NCBI GenBank assembly: GCA_004431415.1
Contig: QPMI01000628.1
Location: 1-64,000 of the forward strand
DNA from: Cyanophora paradoxa CCMP329
Taxonomy: Eukaryota; Plantae; Glaucophyta
Length of the DNA: 64,000 nt
Direction of reading: 5' to 3'
Numbering within the stretch: the stretch's first letter is position 1; every line of letters begins with the position of its first letter. Position numbers and translations under genes: made by a program. The notes beneath the pieces are model-generated. The model was not told where the DNA came from. It did no database searches and saw only the letters and a program-made list of their open reading frames with translations. Of the stretch, positions 44,352-62,411 are shown one piece after another.

Positions 44352-47345
44352 CACTAGTAAAAAGGGCTCCGAACTGATCGAATTGCGACCTAATTGCGAC
44401 CTAATATAATCGATCGCAGTTCAGTCGGCCCGGCGATCTAATACGGATCTAATTGCAATTAGGTCGGAGTTAGGTCGGAGCTTGCGCCGCCTATAGCTTA
44501 TATCTTAGCCCTAGGCGTCCCTTATAACTAATTACAGCTATAGCTCGCTATAGCGCTATAGCGCTAGCCTTAGGCGAGCGCTAGCCCGCCCGGCCGGCGC
44601 CCCGGCCCCCCCGCCCCGCCCCGAGCTATATATCTAAAGCTCATGCTCATCATATATATAGACATCTATATGATCCATATGAGAAGCACTGTTCTATATC
44701 TAAACATGCAGCGGCGAGTGGGCAGAGGGTTCTCCAGGAAATATTCCGGGCCCGCGCTCCTCGCAGGCCGCGGCGTTGGACGCCGCGCTCGGCGTGGGGA
44801 TGGGCCGTGCCAATGCGCGCACGGGGAGCCGCGCGGAGCTGCCCGCGGCCGCCGCCGGGCCGAGACACCCGTCCTAGGAGATAATGTCAGAATAAGGTCA
44901 GACGATGGGTGTTTGGATGGGGGCGATCTGAAGGCGCGCAGCAGCGCGTATTGAAGAGTTATTTAAGATCATGTATAAAGCTTAAGAGCGGCGCCGTGGC
45001 CTGGCGAGCGCGCACCAAAAAAGCGCGGCACTCCGCTGCAGCTTCGCGTGGAGAGCTCGCCTGCAAAATCTGAAAAGTGATAAATTGATATAAGATGCAG
45101 ACTAGTGCGAGGGGAAAGAAAACAGCCGCCAGCCGCCAGGGGGGGGGGGGGGGGGTGCGAGGGGGAGGAGCGGCGGAGGACCCGCTCCGGATCCCGGCAA
45201 CGCCCCCAGGAAGTGTTCTCTTAAAAGTGAGCTGCCGGCCCGGCGGACCCGAGAGTAGGATCATTTAACTCGTATTGAAGTGTTTTATAAGCCTACGCGG
45301 TCGGCCGAAAGTCGGGTCTCCCTCCCCTAAGGACCCCGCGGACCTGGGCGAGCTCGGCGACGTCGAGGTCGCGTAGCCGAGGAAGCCGCCGGCGAGCGGG
45401 GGAGGAGCGGCGGAGGACCCGCTCCCGTGCGGCCGTTTCACGAGCATCTGAGGCGAGGATCACGGCAATGCGCAGCGATTGGGGCGGGGGCGCACGGGTG
45501 CGGCCGCGCGGCCATATGCATGATCATGAAACGTTAACTGCGGCGGGGGTCGGCGCTCGGGCGCGGCGCGGCAACGGGCGGGCTCGCCTGCAACGGGATC
45601 GACCGGAGAGCGGTTGTAGAGCGTTCAGCGTGCGCGCTGCAGCCAGGCGCTCTCGAGGCTGCAAGGAATCCGCACGACACCGGCAGGCCTGCACGGAATC
45701 GCATCGGATCAGGCTGAGAGCATGCAACTGGCATTCTTACATCGACGAAAGATCCCTGTGATGTAAAGCGGGGAGCTGCGCCGAGCCTGGGCCCGGATGA
45801 GCAAGTTCTCCCGAGGTCGGCGCAGCTGGAGAACGCAACGGGAGCTCTCGGGGACCGATCCAGCGCACCAAGCATCCCACGTAGCTCTCGGTGCGCTTCT
45901 GGGCGCGAGCGGCCTGCCGCGATGCCGCACTTATCTGGGCGACGTCGCCTACGGCGGCTGCGGCGACGGCGGCGCTCTCCACTTGTCATAGCTAGTGTCT
46001 TCAGTGCATAGCTGCGCTCGCCGCTTGTCTTGCATACCTCTAGCTAAGAGCAAGGTCGGAGGTCTTCGAACTTGGGTACCGATTTTGAACGGGGTACACA
46101 AGTCGCAAATATCGGAGTCCTCGCTGCCCGCTGCTGCGCCTTGCGGCGCCCGCGGGCGAGCGGAGCATGCAGCAGCGGCCTCTCTAGTGCTGTGTGCATC
46201 TCGTACGTGCGCAGGTCGGCAGCGAGAGCGGGCCGCGGGCGGACTTCGTCGAATCAGGTCCGTGGCCCGCCTCCCGCGAGCTGCCGACTTCTCGGCACAC
46301 TCGTTGCTGATCAGGAAGCTCTAGGAAGCGGGCAGCTTCCACCCGGAGCCCCGAACGGCATTGTCCGCAGCCCGCCAGGTCCAATCCGCGGAACGCGGCT
46401 AAACTCGTGCTCTCGGACGCGCTGCGGTCGCTCTGTGGGCTATTCGTGCTAATCTCCTCACGCAGGAGTGCTTGACGGGCCAGTGCTCTCGCTACCATGG
46501 TCTCTGACTCGCGGCCCCAGATCTTTGCCTGCCTCGAGGCGTGCAGCCCCGTGCGACTTCGCCTCGCGATTCTCGATGAAGGTACGCTCTCCTCCCGGCC
46601 GGCCGCTCGCCGGCGCCGGATCCCCGCCGGGGCCCGCTCGCCCTCTCTGACTCGCGGCCCCAGATCTTTGCCTGCCTCGAGGCGTGCAGCTCCGCGCGAC
46701 TTGGCCTCGCGATTCTCGATGAAGGTACGCTCTCCTCCCGGCCGGCCGCTCGCCGGCGCCGGATCCCCGCCGGGGCCCGCTCGCCCTCTCTGACTCGCGG
46801 CCCCAGATCTTCGCCTGCCTCGAGGCGTGCAGCCCCGCGCCACTTCGCCTCGCGATCCTCGATGAAGGTACGCTCTCCTCCCGGCCGGCCGCTCGCCGGC
46901 GCCGGATCCCCGCCGAGGCCCGCGACGCCCTTGCTGACTCGCGGCCCCATGATCTCGTTCGATATGAATGCGCATTGGCCGCAGCCGCCATATCTTTCTC
47001 CGTTAAGCTTTATATCTCCACCCCTTAGCTAGCTAGCTAGCTAGCCACCTAGATGGCTGTATAATGCGAGTAATCTGATTGCTACATGTATAACGGCAGC
47101 GCAAGGGTGGAACGGCGGGGGGCGGGGGCGGGCCGGGGCGGCGGGGGAGCGCGGGGCAGCCCCCGGCCGCGGGCAGCGGCGATCAAATTGCGATCTAACT
47201 GAGACCTATCTGAATTAGATCGCAGTTCGATCGCAATTCAGTCCATGTCCCCATTTTATGGTCGGAATTAGATCGGTGGCCGATCAAATATATTAGGTCT
47301 CAGTTCAGTCGTAATTAGATCAGTTCGGACCCCTTTTTACTAGTG
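44352..47345. mobile_element. Non-autonomous CACTA (En/Spm) DNA transposon, 2994 bp
   Basis: TIR CACTAGTAAAAAGGG(C/G)TCCGAACTGATC(G/T)AATT(G/A)CGAC at both ends; 3-bp TSD CGA (44349-44351, 47346-47348); subterminal repeats; single CGA at the paralogous empty site near 9155; no transposase motifs recognised. Confidence 0.95.
46503..46950 (+). repeat. 143-bp tandem repeat x3 inside the CACTA element
   Basis: Units begin cag|atct at 46521, 46664 and 46807. Confidence 0.93.
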
Positions 47346-47696: not shown

Positions 47697-50600
47697 ATGG
47701 ATTCGTCGCAGGTACTCGCCGTGGCCGTCGCTCTCACCGCCTGCGGCGCGGCGGCCGTCGTCGCGGCGTGGCAGGTTCGCGCCCACCCGCGTGCCGGCTT
47801 CCGGTGCAGGGTGCATCTAAGCGGACGCCGGCGCCGCGCCACGACGCGCCGGCGCTCTAGAGCTCCGACGATGCCACAAGACACTGACCGAGCGCGCCGC
47901 TGGCGCTTCGCAGAGGCACCTCGCCAAGTCAGTGATCCGAGACGTGGAAGGAAAGGAGATGCCCGGGCCCAAGACTGTGCCGCTCCTTGGCAATTTGCCG
48001 GAGTGCGCTCCACCTAGCCTGCATTCGAATTCGCGGCGCCGCCGGCAGTGCCGAGTGGCGTACGTACGCACGCGCAGGATGGTGTTGGGCGGCGGCCACG
48101 TCGCTCAGATCGCCCACGCCTGGCGCGAAGAGTACGGCCCCATCGTTCAGGTCAGCGCGGGCGATCCCTCCGCGTCTCCTCTCCGCTCACCTTTCCCCAG
48201 TGTTACTTCGCCGGGACGCCCATCGTCTGGATCATGGACGCGAAGCTCGCCCACCGCATGCTCCTCCTGCCTGACCGCATCGCGCGCCCCGGATCAAATT
48301 GCATTGTGCAGATTTTAGCCCGCCTTCTGACCGCGGGCTTTCCGCCTCGCGTTCGCGCGCGCGCAGCCGTCCCCGATCGTGCAGTTCTGCTCCTGGGGCG
48401 GCCGGGGTACGCCCCTTCGTCCGGCGGCGAGCGCGAGATTCAGAGCCCCTCACCCCTCACTCGGCTCGGCAGGCCTGCTGGGTTCGAACGGGCCCTTCCA
48501 CCGCGCGCACCGACGAACGGTCGTCCAGGCGATGAACGATCGCATGTTCCGCAAGGTGGTGCGAGCCGCCCGCGCTCGCCCCGTACCCCAGCCCCCTCGG
48601 CTGTCTTTCAGCTCCAGCTATCCGCCCTCTAGTCCCGGCCCAAGGAGACAGACATTCTCGTCTCAGTTCGCTCAGTTCGACATTCCCGTCTGACTCGGCG
48701 GCGGCTCAGTTCGCTGCGACGACGGAGCGCATGGCGCGGGATGTCTTCCCCGTCTTCGACGTGCGTACCCCCCCCCCGCATCGCCTGCAGCTGTACCCCT
48801 TTTAAGCGTTCCGAATAGCAGCAGCCGGTCCGCGTCCCGTTCCCTAGTCCTCTCCCCCTCCCCCCTGACGCCTTCCGTTCCTCCCCGCTAACGCGGGTCG
48901 CCGGTACCCCCCCCCCCGGGGGGCTCCTACATCACCCCAGAGGGCGTGCGAGGAGGGCGGGTGGCTGGACCCGCGGGCCCCGTTCACATCCCTCACGGGC
49001 GGCGTCCTCATGAAGGCGTGCTCGCGTACCTCTCCCGCGTATCCCGCCCCGCCCCCCCCCCCCCCCCCCCCCCCCGGCCCCCCGAGTTAAACCGATAAAC
49101 AAAGGGCCCTGTGGGCATTGATCGCCCCGCAGACGTGCTTCTCCGTCGACGTCTCCGGTACCCCGCCCCCATCCTCCCCCCTCCCTTCCCCCCGGTTTAA
49201 CGCGTACCCGGCAGCGTCGGCGGTGCTGCCGGGGGGCCTCACGTGGGAGCGCTTCGCGGAGGACTTCGCCATCTACACTAAGGTACCCCCAGAAATGGGG
49301 GGGAAGGGGAGGGGCTGGGGGCTCGACGGGATTCCCCCCCGCTCCCCCCCCTCTCTTACCCCCTGGACCTTCGTTGGGCTCACTTGGTCGTCGCGCAGCT
49401 CTACGCGGACTATTTCCGGGCACGCGACTCCCGGCTCCGCCCCGAGGCCCCGCTCGGGGCCGTACCCCTGACCGGGCCGGGCTACAGACGCCGGCCTTCT
49501 GGCGCTTCGTCAAGACACCTGCGGTCCGGATCCCGGCCCTGGCTCGCAGTTCCCGTGGTCTAATGCTTGTACCCCCCGCAGTTCCGTCGCCTCGAGGCTG
49601 CGATGGAATCCCTGCAGGTGCGCCCCCGCCGCAAGTGAGAGCCCGCTCGAGCGCCATGGGACTGCGGCTCCAAGCCGGAGCTAGGCCTACGCGGCTCGAG
49701 CCCAAGCTCTCTCCGACCGACCGAGCCGCGTGCTAAGCTCACGCGGCTGCGGTCGAAGCATCGCCTCGCCCGCTCCGATGCCCTCTCACAGTCTCGCTCC
49801 GACGCCCTCTAGTGCTCGCCAAGTGCTTCCAAGGTCCAAGGCTTCTAGTGCCCGCTAGTGCCTACGCTTGAGCTTCTTCGTCACTTAAGCTTCCGTTTCA
49901 AGCATCGCCTCGGCTCGCGCAGGCGTGCGAGCTGGCGATCCTGCGGGAGCGCGAGGCGGCGCGGGCGGCGGCCGCGGTGGAAGGGGGCCGCGAGGGCGAG
50001 GGCGACCTCATCGACTCCATCCTCGAGTCGCGGGTGGGTACAGGCCTCTTCAGCGCAGCGCCCCGTACCCCGCCTCGAGCTCCGGGCCCCGCCCTCCGGG
50101 TTGGACCCGCTAAGGGCCGGCCGGGGCCGGGGCCGGGCTGGGCTTGGCCTGGCTGCGCTGGGCTGGGGCGGGATCGACAAGGGGGCGCCTTGAGCTCTGT
50201 CCCGGGATCCCCGCCCCGCCCCGCCCCGCTTTGCCTCGCTCTTCTTGAGTCCCAGCTCCAACCCCTCCTCAACTTGTCTATAGCCCCTACCCCCGCCAAC
50301 CGCCCGCCCCCGTGCCGGCCCTTGACTCGTATCGAACCAGCAACGAATTTCGTACCCCGCCTCTCCTCCGGGTTCCGCCCTCCCCGGCCGGTCTTTAGCC
50401 CCGTTCCCCGCCCTGCGCCCGCTAGCAACGAAGTCCCATCGTGTACCCCCCGGACCCCGCCCGCCCCCTACCCCCCGCGCCCACGCCCGCCCGCCCCGCC
50501 CCGCCCCGCAGGACAAGACCGGCGCGTCCATGGAGGACGTCCGCGTCGACATCCACGGTACCCCCCCTCATCCCCCCCCAGGAAACACTTTTTTCCACCG

Positions 50601-53349
50601 TCGGGGGGGGGGGTAGACCTGCTTCTTGCGGGGCACGACACGACGCAGACGACGCTCTGCTTCGCGCTCGCCGCCCTCGCCCGCTGCCCCGAGGTCAGCG
50701 CCCTCCCCTCCCCCCCTCCCCCCCCCTTCTCGCGCACCAACCCCCTCTATCTACCCCCTACTCCTTTCCCTTCGCCCTCGCCCCCCATCCTCTCCGCAGC
50801 CTATAGGCTCCTCGCCTAGACCTGCCTCGCCCGCTGCCCCGAGCGTCGCGCAAGTTTATAGGGGTCAAATCCGCTCCGGGTACATAGCGCTGGTCCTACG
50901 GAACTAGCTATCGACAGCGCTGCCATCCGGAGGAGCATACGAGATATATAGGGCGGGGCCGGGGGGGGGGGGGGGGGGGGGGGACAGCCGTCGCTTCAGG
51001 AACCGGATCGCGCCTATAATCGCGTACCCGTCGCCTGCCTCCGTCGCCGTCCTCCTTCCCTTCCCTCGATAGAACGTGAATCGTAAATTCGATCTGGCAG
51101 GTCGAGAGGGAGCTGCGAAACGACATGGACCGGGCCCTCGGCGGGCGTACCCCCACCTACGACGACATCCGCGGTCCGCCGCCGCGGTCTTAATTTAGAT
51201 CTGCCGGCCTGCCAGGGAAGCCTTGGAGCCGGCGTTTCGAACCAGATCCCGCAGCGCTGGGGCCGTTGGAGGCCTGCATGAAGGAGGTCCTGCGCCTGTA
51301 CCCCGCCGCCGGCACCGGGTGCGCCCGCGCCCGTACCCCGCCCCGCCCCTCTCACCCCCGCACTCTCCCCCCCCGTGCACACACACGGCCGTACCCCGCC
51401 CCGCCCCGCCCCGCCCCCACCCCCCAGAAGCCGATACCGACGCCACCGCCCCCCCGCAGAATCGTGCGGATGGCCCCGCCGGGGGGGATCGAGCTCGGGG
51501 GGTACAGGATCCCGGAGGGGAGGTGGATGGCGGCGTCCCCCTGGCAGGTGCCCGACCCCGCGCCCAGAGAGAGAGAGATGGATAGACAGACGGGAGCTCG
51601 CTCCTTGGCCGTAAAACCCTCACCGAGTTCAATCTTAGTCCTGAATCAAAGATCCTCGTCGAGTTCCAATCTGAAGAACCTTATGAGCACGCCTTCATGT
51701 CTACTAGGCTAAGCCTTGAAGCTTGGGAAGAAGAAAGTAACTTTCGTAATCGAGCGTGAAAGATTCGCATCTGCTGGCCGCAGCTGCACCGCGACCCGCG
51801 GGTCTTCCCCGAGCCGGGGCGCTTCGCCCCGGCCTAAGACTAAGCTTAGACCTAATCTTTCTTCTTAAGATCTAGAACATTGCGCATGCGAAGAACAACC
51901 TAACAATCGTAATCAAGCTTAAGAAATCACACCCGCGGCTTATATATATATGTCGCGCGCGCCCCCCGCAGCTGCACCGGGACCCGCGGGTCTTCCCCGA
52001 GCCGGAGCGCTTCCTCCCGCGCCGCTTCGCCGGGCGCGACGAGGCCCGTGACCGCGCGTGGATCGCCTTCGGGTGCGCCTTTGGCTCGGCTTTGAGCCAA
52101 ACCAAAATAAATTGAGTTCTCTTACATGAGCTATGAAGCCTTAAGCTTAGAACTGAGCCTTATAATACGATTAGAGCCTCACGCTGGGCCTTACAACACG
52201 ATTAGAGTCTATATCTCTGTACTGTGTTTGCGCTGTGAGACGCGCGCGCGCAGCGGGGGCCCGCGGATGTGCGCGGGGGCGCGCTTCGCGCAGGTCGAGT
52301 TCGTCGCCGCCCTCGCCTGCCTCCTCCAGGTGCCAGAGGGCTATTAATAGCATGCAGCAGCGCCTGTCTCCCCTAGGCTATAGCTAGAAACTGCCTCTAG
52401 CGGACTCTAGATCACCACCTCCGCTAGAGGCGCCTGCCTCCTCCAGGTGCCAGAGGGCCAGACCCCCGATAGCTAGGCGAGATCTAGACCAGATCTACAC
52501 AGACTAGAAATTCCCTTTAGTGGATATATAGAGACTCCCTCTGGCGGACTCTAATCAGCAACTTCGCTAGACCAGATCTAGATCTAGACAGACTTGAGAT
52601 TTCTCATAGCTCCCCCCCCATAGCTCTAGATTTGGGCGCCAGACGTGCCCAGAGATCCCACGTGCACCTTATAATTACAGCTGGATAGAGAATATTAAAA
52701 GTATTCAGCAGCGCCTGCCTCCTCCGATCCAGGTGCGCATGCCAGAGACCAGCCTGGCAGAGACCAGCCTCCGGTAGAGGCGCTTCCTTGGCTGGGTAGC
52801 TTGCTTGCTCCGCGGCTCACCGAGCGGGCGGCCCCCCGCCCGGCGGGCGCGCGCAGCGGTACGAGGTGGAGGCGGCGCCGGAGGGGGCGCCCTGGCCCTA
52901 CCCCTCCTTCGGCATGACCCTCGCGCCCCAGGTGCGAACGAAGGAATCCAAGGCTGACGGAATCTTTGAGCAAGAGGGGCCCGGGTATAGGAATCTAGAG
53001 CGCGGAATTCTAGAGATCTCCCCCACTTCGCCTGCGCCTCCAGCTCCGCTTTCGTCGGGCGCCGCTGTCAATCTACTCTCATTACAAGAAAAGTCTTATG
53101 TAAGCGAAGGAACTTAAACACAGGAATCTATGGCTAGAGTTATAAATACATAGATGTTCTCAATTTAGTCTTCGAAGTCGTTTTTAGTCTAGACCTTCGA
53201 CTTCCCTCCGAGTCCCTCTGACCGGTACCGCGATCCTCGCGCTTCAGGCCGACTGCGCCGTGCGCCTCCGCCGCCGCGCGGCCGCGGCCGCGGCCGGGGG
53301 TGCGGCCGCGGGCGCCCCCGCGGCCCCGGAGCCGGAGCCCGAGGCGTAG
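47697..53349 (+). CDS. Cytochrome P450, multi-exon, apparently complete
   Basis: N-terminal anchor, MPGPKTVPLLGNL, I-helix AGHDTT, K-helix KEVLRLYP (ExxR), HRDPRVFPEPERF, heme motif FG|GGPRMCAG; last exon ..PEPEPEA* at 53349. Confidence 0.92.
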
Positions 53350-56171: not shown

Positions 56172-59100
56172 CTATACGTCGCCGTCGTCCTCCTCGTCGT
56201 CGCCGCCCCTGCCGCCCTTGCGGCCGCCGCCGGCCCCCTGCCGAAGGTTCGCCATCGCTCGCAGGAACTTGTTCGGCGTCCAGACGTGCGTCGAGCCTGT
56301 CAGGCGGCGGGTTCGAATCCGGCGCGGGCCGGATGTGGGCGCAAGGGACGGGTACCGACGAGGATGTCGCGCTTGTTCGCGTTGGCCACTTCGTGCGCCG
56401 CCCGCGTCTCGCTGGGAGCGGCATCAGCGAAGTTGACGCTGGGGTCTAGGGGGTACGGGTCCACACCTGAAAGTCACGCCGCCCGCAACGAACACTATGA
56501 CGCGGGGCCCCGTCACCGTCTCCTCCTGCGCCGCGGGTTCGGATCCGGGCGGGGATGTTTCCCCAAAGGGGGTACACGAGCCTTGCCCTTCTTGCCGGCG
56601 CCCCAGGAAGGCTTCTTCGTCGACCGGCGCTCCTCGGAGGCCGACGAGGAACCCGCCCCCGGCTGCACCTGCGTACCACCAGCACGAGTCAGGAGGGGTT
56701 GAGAGAGATGAAGGGGGGGGAGGAGGGGAGAGCAGGACCTTGCGCGTGTCGTAGAAGGGGTATGCGTCCGCAGGCAACTCGTCCTTCACGAGCTCCTTTG
56801 GGGGGGGGGGGGGGGTCAGCAGGAGGGTACGGAAGTTGCAGGACACGAGGGGGGGTACGAGGGCCCACCTCGAGAATGGTGCGGAGGTGCGGCTGGTACC
56901 TCGAGAGCTCGTAGGGCACGTCGTCCGAGCGCTGCGGGGCGTGAGGGGGGGACCGGTGCAGGCGAAAAAAAAGCCTGGGGTACCCGCGTCTTCTTCCGCT
57001 TCTTCCCCCCGAAGAGTGACTTGGAGAGGCTCTTCTGGGGCTACGAGGGGGCGAGATCAGATCAGAAAAGATCGGATCGGATCAGATCGGATCAGATCAG
57101 ATCAGATCAGGTGAGATCGAATTCGAACCTTGGCGATGGAGACGCCGATCTCCTTCAGGTTGAGCAGGGCGGCCTGGCCGGCCGGCTGGCGTCAGCCGCG
57201 GGGGGTACGTCGCGGGGCCTGCCCTCTCCCAGGACTAGGATTGAGCACGCCTCCCATCCTCCTATCCGGCCGCGGGGTTCCCAAAGACGCCTCCCATCCT
57301 ATCCGGCGCGCGCACCTGGTCGGGCTATCCCATCCTATCCCTCCCAGCCCTGGGCACGCCTCCCACCCTACCCGCCCCGCCTCCCATCCTCCCATCCTAC
57401 CCGCTCTCAGCCTACCTGGTCGGCGAGGGTCAGGCCGGCGGACTTGAAGAGCTTGTCGCGGTCGCTCTCCTTGATGCCCTCCTGCGCGCGGCGCGGGCGG
57501 GGCGGGCGTGAGTGAGGCGGCGCGGCAAGTCGTCGCCTCCCGCGCATTGTGCAGGGGAGCTGGGCGCTGGACCCCGCGCCCCTCTAGCTAGCAACTAGGC
57601 GCTGGACCCCGCACCCCCATCACCTGGGTGATGATGTAGATCATAACTAGGGGACTAGGGGGACTAGCGCATGGAGCAAGGGACTAGGCGCTGGACCCCG
57701 CGCCCCTCCACCAAGTCCGGCGCCTCTACTCCCGACTCTCGCGGGCACCTGGGTGATGATGTAGATCATGAGGAGGCGCATCTTGTCCTCCGGGGAGCGC
57801 GAGGTGTCGGCGAGCAGCGGGATCAGCGCGTTCACGAGGCCACGCGGCGCGTTCCCGTCCACGTCCTCCCCGCACGCCATGTCCTGCGCTCGCATCGGAT
57901 CCGATCCGATCCGATCCGATCTGATCTAAGGCGGGGCTAGAGGCGGGGGTCGGGCGGGGCGCCCGGCCGACCTGCTTCTAAGATCTCAAAGCTTCGAAGA
58001 TCTAATTATCATAGAAGAAGGAGGCGTCGGGGACCTGCTCGAGGCGGGAGAGCTTCTCGAGGTCTAAGCTTCTAGATCCCAGAGCTTCTAGATCCCAAAG
58101 CTTCTAAGACCTAAGATCTTCTAAGACCCAAGATAGATCTTCTTGGGTACCGGGCGGACCTGCTCGAGGCGGGAGAGCTTCTCGAGGTCGAGCTCGTGGA
58201 ACTTGGCCATGCAGTTCTTCAGCAGCGTCATGTGCAGCGAGTACTGCGCGCGCGAGGAGCGTGAGAGGCAGAAGCGCAGCCGAGCATGCTAGGGTGCTAG
58301 GGTGCTAGGGTGCTAGGGTGCAAGGGCGCAGCGTTGCAGGCGTCGAGCTGCTAGAGCTAGAGGGCCGCCCGCCCAGCTAGGGGTCAAGCTGCTAGGGCTA
58401 GAGGGCCCAGAGAGCTAAAAGGCCCGAACGTGGAATCCAAACGAGGCGCGAATCTTAGCTCGAGCGGACCTTGGCGAGGAGCTCCTTGGCTAGGAATCTA
58501 AACTTAACCAAACTATCTCCAAATCCTGGGATCTACAGGGCGTACCTTGGCCAAGAGCTCCTTGGCCTGGGGCAGCGAGCGGATCGCCTCCATCATGTCC
58601 GAGAGCTCCTTCACCTCGCCCACCGACGCCCGCGCCGCCTTGTTGTTCTGCGCGGGATGGAAGGCCGAGGCCGAGCGGATCAGCGGGGGTTCTTCAGAAG
58701 GATCGGGTTACTGGAGCGGGCAGCAGAGATCAGGAATACTGCTAGAGTTCCGGTTGCCGCAGGCTGATACCGCCGAGCACTCTCCCCTAACCTCCAAGCG
58801 CCCTCGGCCCGCCCCGCGGCCCGCGGGGGCGGGGGCGGGGGAGGGGGCGGGGGCGGCTCGGGGAGGGCGGCCTCTTAGGCCGTAGGCCTCGTAGGCCGGA
58901 TCTCTGATCTCTGATCTCAAAAGCGGACCTTGAGGTAGTCGTTGAACTGGTCGACGACGGAGTTCATGCACTCCGCCACGTGGCTGTGCCGCAGCGTCTG
59001 AAGAAGAAGAGGAAGAAGAAGTCAGAAGAGCAGGGGTTGGGGGGGGGGGGGGGGGGGCGGTGGGGGCGAGGGGGTGGGGGGGTACTTCGCGGACCTGCCA

Positions 59101-62100
59101 GAGGGCGTCGTTCTCGCCCAGGACGACCTCGCGCTCCCCGGAGCCCGACGCCTGCGGCGAAAGGAACGGGTACGTGAGCGAGAGAGCCAGGGAAGCGGCG
59201 GGGGAGGGTGGCTGAGCCGGAGGGCTTGTGTCTTTTTATCCATCTCGTGGATCTCACTGTTAGCTTTTTGGGCCGCGCACCTTGCCCTTCTTGGCGCCGG
59301 AGCTGCTGCCCTCGTCGGCGGCCGGCGCGCCCTCCGCCTTCAGCCTGTCCCGAGATCGGATCAGATCGGATCGGATCAGATCAGATCAGATCTGACCTGA
59401 TGCGGTCGCCGTCCTCGACGTCGAGCAGGTCGTAGACCATCGCCTGCGCGGACATAAGGCTCGAGAAGGCTGACAGGAGCGCGGCGGGGCGAGCGGGGGC
59501 CGGCCGGGCCGGGGCGGGGCCGGGCCGGGGCGGGCCGGGCCGGGGGCCGGGCGGGGGCAGCCGCCTTCGTGGGTGAAGCACGACCCGATAGATAACTCTC
59601 TCTTAGTTCTCTCTTAGGCGCTGGGCCGGGGGCGGGGGCGGGAGTCTGCCTGGTAGGGGTACTCGTGGGTTACTAGCAGACTAGTACGAGGACTAGTACG
59701 AGGCTTCGAACATCGTCTCTCGGGGGGCCGGGGGCGGGCGCGGGGGCGGGGGTTTGCCTGGTAGGAGTACTCGTGGGTGAGGCAGGCGACGGCGTCGACG
59801 GAGCGGTCCAGGATCAGCAGCGTCGCCGGCTGCGGCGCCGTCGCCTGCCCAAGGAGGAAGGGGAAGAGGTTAGGAGGCGCTGAAACACCCTCTTCCAAAC
59901 TTAGACCTTAGACCCTTAAACCCTAAAGGGGAGGAGGTCGGGAGGCGGCGACCGGACGGGTCGCGCTGGAAGAAAGACCTCCCCCAGACTTTAGAACGTT
60001 AAAGCCTGGGAAACGGAGGGGAGGGGTCGGAGGCCGTAGTTGAGGAGGGACACGAGGCGTCCCAATGGCGTTCCTAGGGCCGCGCAGGACCCCTTCCCCC
60101 CCCCCCCCCCCCCGCCCCCTCCCCCCCTTCCCCCCGGGCGCGGCGGGCGGACCTTGATCACGCCGCTCTTGCAGGCGGCGGACCCTTAGACCCTTAGAAC
60201 CTTAGAGCCCGGGGATCGGAGCTTGGATTAGAGCCCTTAGCGTCTTAGCTTCGGCTTCTTAAGCTTCATAGCATCAGAATCCCCTTGAGCTCGCTCTTAG
60301 CGACTTCACAGCGGCGGGCGGACCTTGATGACACCGCTCTTGCAGGCGGCGTCGATCTTGCTGGCGGCGAGCTTCGCCAGCTCGGCCGCGACCTGGCCGG
60401 CAGGGCGGGGCGGGGCGGGGCGGGGCGGGGCCGGCGTCAGTCACGCGGGCGAGGGGAGCTCGAGGGCAAGCTTAATTGAGAAGCCGGCGCTGAGCAGCTC
60501 GAGGATAGTCGCTCGCTAAGCTGACCGCTTGAGGAGCCCTAGCGCTTAGCGAGCTTGTGGAGCTCATGAAGCTAAAGCTTGAGTAACTCAAGAAGCCGAA
60601 GCTGGGATCGAGGGGCGGCTAAACTAGCTAAGCTGACCTGGGAGTGCGAGTCGTGGCGGACGACGGGCTATGAAGCTTAAGAATCGTTCGCTATGAAGCT
60701 ATGAAGTTTCTAAGAGCGAGCTTAAGGAGATTATGATGCTATGAAGCTTAAGAAGCCGAAGCCAAGCGGACCTGGGAGTGGGAGTCGTAGCGGATGATGG
60801 GGTTCTCGCCCAGCGTTGCGCACAGCGTCATCAGCTGCGCCCCCGCCGGCGTCAGCGGGGGGCGGGAGGGAGGCGGGGCGAGCCGCCGAGCCCGGAGGCC
60901 GAGCTAGGAAAGCTGTAACGGAGGGAGGCGAGGAGAGCCGCCGAGCCCGGAGGCCGAGCCAAGGTAAATCGAAGCATCTAAGATGCAAGCCAAACTCGGC
61001 CCTTCTCGTTAGGCCTTAGCTTAAGCTGAGGCGGGCCGAGCGTGGCGTCTGCGCCCGTCTAGCCCGGATCGCCCCTCGCTCGCGCGCGTGAACCTTTTAA
61101 GGCCTCTAAGCCTCTAGATAGGCCCTGCTAGATAGGCCTCGAAGCAGAGGTGGGCCTAGCCTGGCGTCTCACGCGCCTGGACCATGGTGCGGTCCAGGAG
61201 CCCCCAGAGGCCGAGCTAAGTAGGTTAAACCGTAGCACCTAGGCTAGGCGAGCTAGGCGAAGCTGCAGCATCTAAGATGCAAACTAAACTTCTCAGTCTG
61301 GCCGGTGCGGTCCTTCTAGATGGGCCTCCAAGCAGACCTGGACCATGGTGCGGTCCTTCTCGATGGCGGCCTCGCGCTTGCCCTGGAAGTCCGGCGAGAA
61401 GAGCAGCGCCAGCGAGTCCGGCAGCTCCTCCTGGGCTGCGAAGGGGGGTAAGGGGAGGACGGGGGGGAGAGGGGGAGGGGGGTACTGCGCACTCTTGGCG
61501 CCGCCGGTGCCCCAGAAGCGCAGGAGGTCGGGCGGGTCGAAGAGGAACGTCGACCCCTTCTCGCTCCCCTCGTACGCTGATCCGATCCGATTCCAATCAG
61601 ATCGAATTCTTCGAGTTCGAATTCGAATTCGAATCTTAAATTTGCGTACCCAGGAACTCGAGGTAGACCTCCTTGACCGTCCGGATGCGCTTGATGAGCG
61701 GATCGCACGTGCGCAGCTTGCGGAAGAGGTCGTCGCTGATCTCTGCGCAGCGGGCGGGCGTGTCAACAGGACGGAGAAGGACCGGCGGAGCGGAGCGGGC
61801 GCGGGCGCGGGCGCACTGGAGGTGATGAAGAGGTGGACGGCGGCGTACTGGGGCCGCTTCGCGTCCTTAAAGTCTTCGCAGAGGGCGTCGATAGAGCGCG
61901 CCGTGGGCGAGATGATGTAGATCGCCTCCATCTGGGGGCGCAGCGCCCCGCGTCGGAAGGCTGCTGCGGGCGCGCGGCGCGGGCGCGGCGGCGGGTGGGC
62001 GGCGGGCGGACCTCGGAGAGCGGCTGGCGCTTGGCCTTGCCCTCCGGATCGATCTTTTCCACGACTGCGCGGCGCGGCGGTCGGCGGCGGGGCGGCGCGG

Positions 62101-62411
62101 CGCGCGGCGGGCGGCGCGGGCCGGGGCGCGGCGCGGCGCACGGGTCACGCCCTCTTCCATGATATCATACATGCGGCAGGCGGCCGAGACGATGCGGAGC
62201 GTGACCGCATCGCAGACGACGACCTTCCAGCCGCTCGACGGCTTGACAGAGCGCACGATGTCCTGCAGGAGCCCTGCGCCGCGCTCACAGTGAGTTGCCG
62301 CGCGGGAGAGGCGCGGCCGGCCGGCGCACTCTCTTTGACGAGCTCGCGGAGGCTGCGCGCGCGTGAGCGGGGGTTGGCGGCGGTCGGCGGTGGCGCGGCG
62401 GACCTCGGCAT
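56172..62411 (-). CDS. SEC1: Sec1/Munc18 (SM) family syntaxin-binding protein
   Basis: WKVVVCD..RIVSAACRMYDIMEEGVT; MEAIYIISPT..SI; YAAVHLF; LCATLGENPIIRY; LLILDRSVD..LTHEYSYQAMVYDLL; LW..LRH.H; YSLH; EQDMACG; DKMRLLMIY; YELSRY; RVIVFVAGGVT.SE.R. Confidence 0.96.

Follow-up and report, generated by a model that had tools for sequence, protein, structure and literature searches.

Junction duplications in the long introns of a Cyanophora paradoxa Sec1 gene as probable scars of local duplication and insertion

Why should the long introns of a single gene carry, one after another, a diverged copy of the end of the preceding exon together with its splice donor? The question is raised by a Sec1/Munc18-family gene of the glaucophyte Cyanophora paradoxa CCMP329, which lies on contig QPMI01000628.1 (assembly GCA_004431415.1); positions 1 to 64,000 of its forward strand, a stretch of 64,000 nucleotides (nt), were analysed and are called the window here. 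An earlier note on this DNA had listed at least seven pairs of exon end and intronic copy (echo), and had proposed that the echoes either allow stepwise removal of the introns or are alternative exon ends. It had also offered a neutral alternative, in which duplications that span a junction are simply the tolerated ones. The analysis presented here suggests that the echoes are probably mutational scars of local duplication and insertion, produced by the repair of staggered breaks, that have lengthened introns which were once short.

The gene was modelled from splice sites read in the sequence:

56172..62411, minus strand: Sec1/Munc18-family gene

The model has 26 exons and 685 codons including the stop, with reading frames that are consistent exon by exon. 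Its 25 introns fall into two length classes, namely 16 short introns of 50–129 nt and nine long introns of 242–503 nt. The mean intron length in C. paradoxa is 86 base pairs (bp) (PMC6704402).

All seven pairs are present where they had been placed, on the minus strand. After ungapped extension, the two copies of a pair are 20–63 nt long, 83–100% identical and 76–171 nt apart. These pairs, together with two weaker echoes, are:

61337..61356, minus strand: intron 7 source, end of exon 7 plus the first intron base
61176..61195, minus strand: intron 7 echo, 20 nt, 100% identical, 161 nt downstream of its source; donor GC, not GT
61304..61323, minus strand: second, partial intron 7 echo (source 61347-61366), 20 nt, 95% identical; GAG changed to TAG
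60760..60801, minus strand: intron 8 source, last 30 nt of exon 8 and first 12 nt of the intron
60626..60667, minus strand: intron 8 echo, 42 nt, 86% identical, 134 nt downstream; donor score equal to that of real donors
60311..60351, minus strand: intron 9 source, last 28 nt of exon 9 and first 13 nt of the intron
60140..60180, minus strand: intron 9 echo, 41 nt, 95% identical, 171 nt downstream; donor the same as the true donor
59716..59778, minus strand: intron 10 source, last 21 nt of exon 10 and first 42 nt of the intron; true donor GC
59608..59670, minus strand: intron 10 echo, 63 nt, 83% identical (90% in a core of 48 nt), 108 nt downstream
58540..58566, minus strand: intron 15 source, last 21 nt of exon 15 and first 6 nt of the intron
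58464..58490, minus strand: intron 15 echo, 27 nt, 89% identical, 76 nt downstream; strong donor
58156..58189, minus strand: intron 16 source, last 30 nt of exon 16 and first 4 nt of the intron
58031..58064, minus strand: intron 16 echo, 34 nt, 100% identical, 125 nt downstream; sharp at either edge, with unrelated flanks
57746..57769, minus strand: intron 17 source, last 21 nt of exon 17 and first 3 nt of the intron
57621..57644, minus strand: intron 17 echo, 24 nt, 100% identical, 125 nt downstream
57314..57323, minus strand: weak intron 18 echo of the end of exon 18 and its GT, 10 nt (p = 0.04)

The association with intron length and with the 5' end is pronounced. A 5' junction probe, composed of the last 40 exon bases and the first 15 intron bases, was compared with its own intron and with 200 shuffles. 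It scores 19.5–36 in introns 7, 8, 9, 10, 15, 16 and 17, and none of the 200 shuffles scores as high. A strong echo of the intron's own 5' junction is therefore found in seven of the nine long introns and in none of the 16 short ones; intron 14 has no echo that this probe detects. Probes for the 3' junction give nothing comparable in any of the 25 introns. Whatever exon sequence the long introns contain is a direct-orientation copy of the end of the exon just upstream, and no copies of exon interiors, of other exons or of downstream exons occur there. Repeats of the same size and spacing are also located entirely inside introns, where the same process seems to act, and introns 10 and 16 hold additional degenerate copies of their junction.

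Which of the two copies is the real end of the exon can be judged by homology. For this purpose each exon was translated and searched singly, and no joined spliced protein was used for any search. Exons 2, 4, 10, 16 and 17 match the Pfam Sec1 profile (PF00995) in profile order, with the match to exon 16 stopping at profile position 349 and that to exon 17 beginning at 350. A transcript-derived Sec1 protein of Gloeochaete, another glaucophyte (P0002), aligns collinearly over exons 2–26, and its residue numbering is contiguous across the junctions of exons 10/11, 15/16, 16/17 and 17/18. By these alignments the upstream copy of each pair is identified as the true exon end, so that the echo, and the sequence between the copies (the filler), are predicted to be intronic. 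Word searches with a 282-residue open frame and with the published gene model returned no other genomic or transcript sequence from Cyanophora, only the published protein and distant Sec1 proteins.

The published model, tig00021438_g21453.t1 (P0001, 414 residues), matches most of exons 2–15 residue for residue. It omits the real exons 8 and 10, the latter with a conserved Sec1 motif. It also splices the true donor of exon 15 to an AG within the echo of intron 15, where the model ends, and is without exons 16–26. From these omissions the published annotation is, as judged by homology, wrong at echo-bearing introns. The sites affected are:

58458-58493, minus strand: site affected by the published mis-annotation
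60772-60834, minus strand: site affected by the published mis-annotation
59758-59844, minus strand: site affected by the published mis-annotation

The edges of the copies define what was duplicated. In introns 16 and 17, copies of 34 and 24 nt are 100% identical while the neighbouring bases are unrelated; the duplicated unit is thus the repeated segment itself (X in the following) and not a long, diverged tandem block. Tandem duplication of blocks of 76–171 nt with subsequent divergence is ruled out in these two introns on the same grounds. Tandem Repeats Finder does not report the 76–171-nt periods of the Sec1 pairs. Where further segments are shared, their offsets are collinear in introns 16 and 17 and not in introns 7 and 9. 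All seven main echoes extend past the donor, by 1–42 nt, and since they include intron bases the introns must be older than the copies. Between echo and exon copy, the exon-derived parts differ at 9 of 168 sites (5.4%).

The filler separating the two copies is 45–140 nt long in the Sec1 gene. There is no sign that it represents a repeat family: in an all-against-all comparison the fillers of different introns are unrelated, and blastn finds no dispersed copies within the window. No terminal inverted repeats were seen, though the ends of each filler were not individually tested. Words of 10 nt that the fillers share with introns of a neighbouring cytochrome P450 gene are merely short and palindromic. 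Structured RNA was considered and rejected, with folding z-scores of −1.8 to +0.4 relative to shuffled sequences and no Rfam match at the gathering score. The same applies to an origin as older, decayed echoes; with the echoes masked, the intron's own junction probe scores a mean of 8.9, against 8.1 for probes from other introns (standard deviation 1.5). What the fillers do resemble is their own intron, in five of seven cases, with scores of 15.5–29 as opposed to 5–11 against other introns. In six of the seven, the G+C content is 0.39–0.56, below that of the rest of the introns (0.60–0.77), and TAG and TAA words are abundant.

Two cases illustrate how filler may have been copied. One concerns a pair of inverted-repeat arms that are 90% complementary:

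60698..60766: inverted-repeat arm in intron 8, 69 nt, from +6 to +74 of the intron, within the stretch that separates exon 8 from its echo
60244..60312: inverted-repeat arm in intron 9, 69 nt, starting exactly at the end of the exon 9 source copy

As the second arm begins where the exon 9 source ends, the start of the intron 9 filler is an inverted copy of the intron 8 sequence that follows the exon 8 donor. The 69-nt inverted repeat flanks exon 9, and each arm begins a few bases past a donor. The arms are predicted to form an RNA duplex of −113.6 kcal/mol, which would loop out exon 9; the repeat could favour skipping of this exon or formation of a circular RNA. The other case is a segment of intron 17 that is present three times:

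57563-57584, 57594-57617 and 57683-57708, minus strand: three copies of a segment of 22–24 nt in intron 17

One copy lies in the filler and two lie downstream of the echo, which indicates that the filler was templated from the downstream intron; it ends in stuttered copies of the tail of this segment. Several fillers end beside the echo in two or three short tandem units, and all of these units are different. Part of the filler is thus copied from nearby intron sequence.

Sharp-edged direct repeats around partly templated filler bear the mark of staggered breaks that were repaired with errors. Duplications of tens of base pairs are a known product of filling in complementary overhangs (PMC8355091). 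In the mechanism envisaged for the Sec1 introns, two nearby nicks on opposite strands, or an equivalent staggered double-strand break, would lie 20–60 nt apart and give overhanging ends. Filling in of both overhangs would leave the stretch between the nicks, X, present twice, and the ends would then be joined with 45–140 nt of filler between the copies, part of it synthesised by a stuttering process that would use nearby intron sequence, direct or inverted, as its template. The consequence would depend on where X lies. Wholly within an exon, the event would break the gene; across an acceptor, the upstream copy would retain the branch point and capture splicing. Across a donor, the upstream copy would stay on the exon and be used as before, and filler, second copy and old intron would all be spliced out together. 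In young introns of Daphnia, lengthening by repeated staggered breaks with insertions has been proposed, the inserts being flanked by exon-end repeats of 4–12 bp (PMC4202315).

With introns of about 50–90 nt and X of 20–63 nt, most of the tolerated hits must span the donor, and nearly every long intron would consequently echo its own 5' junction. This was quantified by simulated placement of events, with the Sec1 exons, the lengths of the short introns and the observed lengths of X, and with the last 25 nt of each intron protected. When introns are short, 64% of tolerated events span the donor and at least seven of nine do so with a probability of 0.31. When introns are already long, only 11% span the donor, and the observed seven of nine is incompatible with this (p = 6e-6). 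It is therefore the neutral alternative of the earlier note, a preference set by what is tolerated, that these tests favour.

Echoes are not confined to the Sec1 gene. A cytochrome P450 gene, recognised by Pfam, lies beside it on the plus strand and has two 5' echoes and one 3'-junction echo:

50675-50693 and 50825-50843, plus strand: source and echo of the first 5' pair
52314-52341 and 52431-52458, plus strand: source and echo of the second 5' pair, with more degenerate copies near 52712-52745
51778-51825 and 51966-52013, plus strand: 3'-junction echo and its real counterpart

The 3'-junction echo repeats the acceptor and 42 exon bases, 188 nt upstream of the real exon. One of the P450 echoes has lost its GT. 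Counted by side, 5' and 3' echoes number 7–8 and 0 in Sec1, and 2–3 and 1 in the P450 gene.

The scheme of break repair meets several difficulties. The bias towards the 5' junction is strong, and it is explained only by an assumed selection against events that span an acceptor; the short ancestral state of the introns is likewise an assumption. The exon-derived part of the duplication measures 16–30 nt in all nine events and is never longer, and its length modulo 3 is 0 or 1 in nine of nine (p = 0.026, post hoc). The intron-side edge falls between 0 and +13 in eight of nine, where a random window would spread more, a clustering that is itself biased by the faster decay of the intron part and by the design of the probe. 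Some introns contain two or three echoes, which requires repeated events or later duplication of blocks. Finally, in introns 8, 9 and 15 the echo donor equals real donors in score, and it is not evident why these donors should not be used. All of this weighs against the reading preferred here, which nevertheless remains the probable one.

Could the echoes instead take part in splicing? AG/G is intact in all seven, as had been claimed, and AG/GT in six, the echo of intron 7 having AG/GC. With 5.4% divergence in the exon-derived part, survival of AG/GT in most echoes is expected, and the observed retention is no better than this; a motif of 4 nt survives this often by chance. The synonymous or conservative nature of the differences, noted earlier, is real in so far as five are synonymous and four non-synonymous, but it does not exceed what a constrained exon and a free echo would give (p = 0.08). 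In recursive splicing, the AG/GT of an echo would act as a zero-length exon, the intron being removed from the true donor to the echo AG and then from the regenerated donor to the acceptor. In keeping with this, AG directly precedes GT or GC in seven of seven echoes, the first segment (76–171 nt) would be near the ordinary intron size of this gene, and joining of the exon to the echo GT would restore the original donor. Against it stands the lack of a branch-point motif: within the 50 nt upstream of each AG, the motif YTRAY (mostly CTGAC or CTGAT in Sec1) is found for 14 of 25 real acceptors and for none of the seven echo AGs (Fisher p = 0.009), which are preceded by 16–30 nt of copied coding sequence and have no acceptor context. 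The echo donor is moreover degraded in introns 7, 10 and 17, and the host introns measure merely 242–503 nt. Known recursive splice sites lie in introns of many kilobases. Stepwise removal of the Sec1 introns is accordingly regarded as extremely unlikely. The proposal of alternative exon ends fares no better, because use of an echo donor adds 76–171 nt that bring an in-frame stop in six of seven cases, with a frameshift as well in five of these. Only the echo donor of intron 10 keeps the frame open, and it would add 36 codons (59650-59757) inside the most conserved Sec1 motif. Six echo donors score below their true partners and one ties, on a matrix derived from the 25 real donors; none scores higher. 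The echo donors would then be unused, or would only feed nonsense-mediated decay.

The length of the exon part, the clustering of edges and the multiple echoes leave room for a process that is aimed at donors, or for a use of the spare donors. Breaks or template switches might arise at the exon–intron junction, for example in connection with transcription or splicing, or echoes might be kept by selection as decoys, as U1-binding enhancers or as switches into unproductive splicing. This alternative is rather unlikely. A process at the donor junction would explain the constant 16–30 nt of exon, the edge at 0 to +13 and the scarcity of 3' echoes. The strong 5' polarity, the occurrence of several echoes in single introns, the full consensus strength of three echo donors and the presence of echoes that are 100% intact beside scrambled flanks also speak for it; however, the neutral model with short ancestral introns already yields about 64% donor-spanning events, and AG/GT is kept no better than divergence predicts, one echo having GC and one P450 echo being without GT. 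The echo donors do not outscore the true ones, and there are, besides, one 3'-junction echo and duplicates of equal size that lie entirely in introns. In its specific form, namely that the duplications are made at the donor by a process tied to transcription or splicing, or that the spare donors of introns 8, 9 and 15 divert transcripts to nonsense-mediated decay as a means of regulation, the idea is distinctly unlikely. It is very improbable that the fillers were inserted by retrotransposon enzymes, through target-primed reverse transcription of assorted RNAs, with the echo as a target-site duplication of variable and sometimes considerable length. Direct repeats of variable length (19–63 nt) do flank the inserts, the short tandem units beside several echoes recall the tails of some long and short interspersed nuclear elements (LINEs and SINEs), and LINEs make up 2.47% of the C. 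paradoxa genome (PMC6704402). Yet the fillers have no tail, poly(A) or sequence in common, their terminal tandem units all differ, parts of them are copies of their own or a neighbouring intron (one of them inverted), and dispersed copies are absent from the 64 kb. An assembly artefact, in which two haplotypes or reads were mis-joined and the real genome has a single copy, merits next to no credence. A few substitutions, of the kind that alleles show, do separate several echoes from their exon copies; the genome is, however, most likely haploid, and its PacBio assembly was corrected with Illumina reads (PMC6704402). A mis-join would also not place at least 11 events in two genes, all at splice junctions and with unrelated filler between the copies.

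Several other features of the window touch on these introns and their splice sites. The GC donor of intron 10 (59756-59757) has the lowest score among the 25 real donors. The word GTACCCC occurs 73 times in the whole window, where 5.9 occurrences are expected, and is found in the Sec1 gene at 56450, 56569, 56852, 56977, 57202, 59079 and 61479. In the Sec1 and P450 genes, where it is on the sense strand, the word forms the donor or lies 8–11 nt downstream of the donor in short introns, and in the echo of intron 10 a Ser-to-Pro change creates it. Pentanucleotide arrays of the GATCY type, and single-base runs of G or C of about 40 nt, are also located within introns:

57054-57118: GATCY-type array in intron 19
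57894-57926: GATCY-type array in intron 16
59353-59392: GATCY-type array in intron 11
60096-60135, 59039-59082 and 49043-49083: runs of a single base, G or C, of about 40 nt

The array in intron 16 is the inverse complement of the other two, which gives long-range inverted repeats of 29–40 nt that are 83–93% complementary. The single-base runs may be error-prone spots of long-read assembly. At 46501-46955, a unit of 143 nt is repeated 3.2 times at 95% identity; on the plus strand the unit looks like an exon of 61 nt preceded by a branch point and an acceptor and followed by a donor and a short intron, and a whole exon–intron module appears to have been duplicated in tandem.

If the reading as repair scars is correct, C. 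paradoxa shows unusually clearly how short introns grow. Each step of expansion would leave a dated scar, an echo that diverges (by 0–14% here) from a constrained exon copy, and because of this divergence the rates and mechanisms of intron expansion would become measurable genome-wide. There is also a practical cost to annotation, as spare donors mislead gene prediction. The Sec1 locus further suits the study of how the spliceosome chooses between equal donors that are 76–171 nt apart.

A literature search found no report of duplicated donors or junction duplications, and the nearest known systems each share a part of the pattern. The ratchet points of long animal introns resemble the echoes in their juxtaposed AG and GT within an intron. 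The Sec1 echoes, in contrast, have no branch-point or acceptor context upstream, lie in introns of less than 0.5 kb and have the site inside a copied exon end. In the tandem-duplication model of intron gain, duplication of a segment with AGGT creates a new intron, which runs from the first GT to the second AG. The likeness is that the duplication includes an AGGT at the exon end; in Sec1, however, the echo carries up to 42 intron bases and the intron continues for 139–341 nt past it, so that no new intron arises.

Introners, transposons whose insertion gives rise to new introns, take over a splice site from the duplicated target site (PMC12130899; 10.1101/2022.06.06.494994). Here, too, a duplicated target repeats or supplies a splice site next to inserted DNA, but there is no repeat family in the window, the length of the duplication varies (19–63 nt) and the inserts partly copy local intron sequence. 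Fill-in by CST-guided Pol alpha-primase, followed by end joining (PMC8355091), gives duplications whose length is set by the distance between nicks, and which likewise measure tens of base pairs and have sharp edges. Those duplications are directly adjacent, whereas in Sec1 the copies are separated by 45–140 nt of partly templated filler. In the young introns of Daphnia (PMC4202315), direct repeats also flank the insert, the end of the neighbouring exon forms one of the two, and the intron grows longer through repeated events. The Daphnia repeats derived from exons are short (4–12 bp) and mark new introns, while those described here span 19–63 nt, include the donor and intron bases, and expand pre-existing introns, in seven of the nine long introns of one gene.

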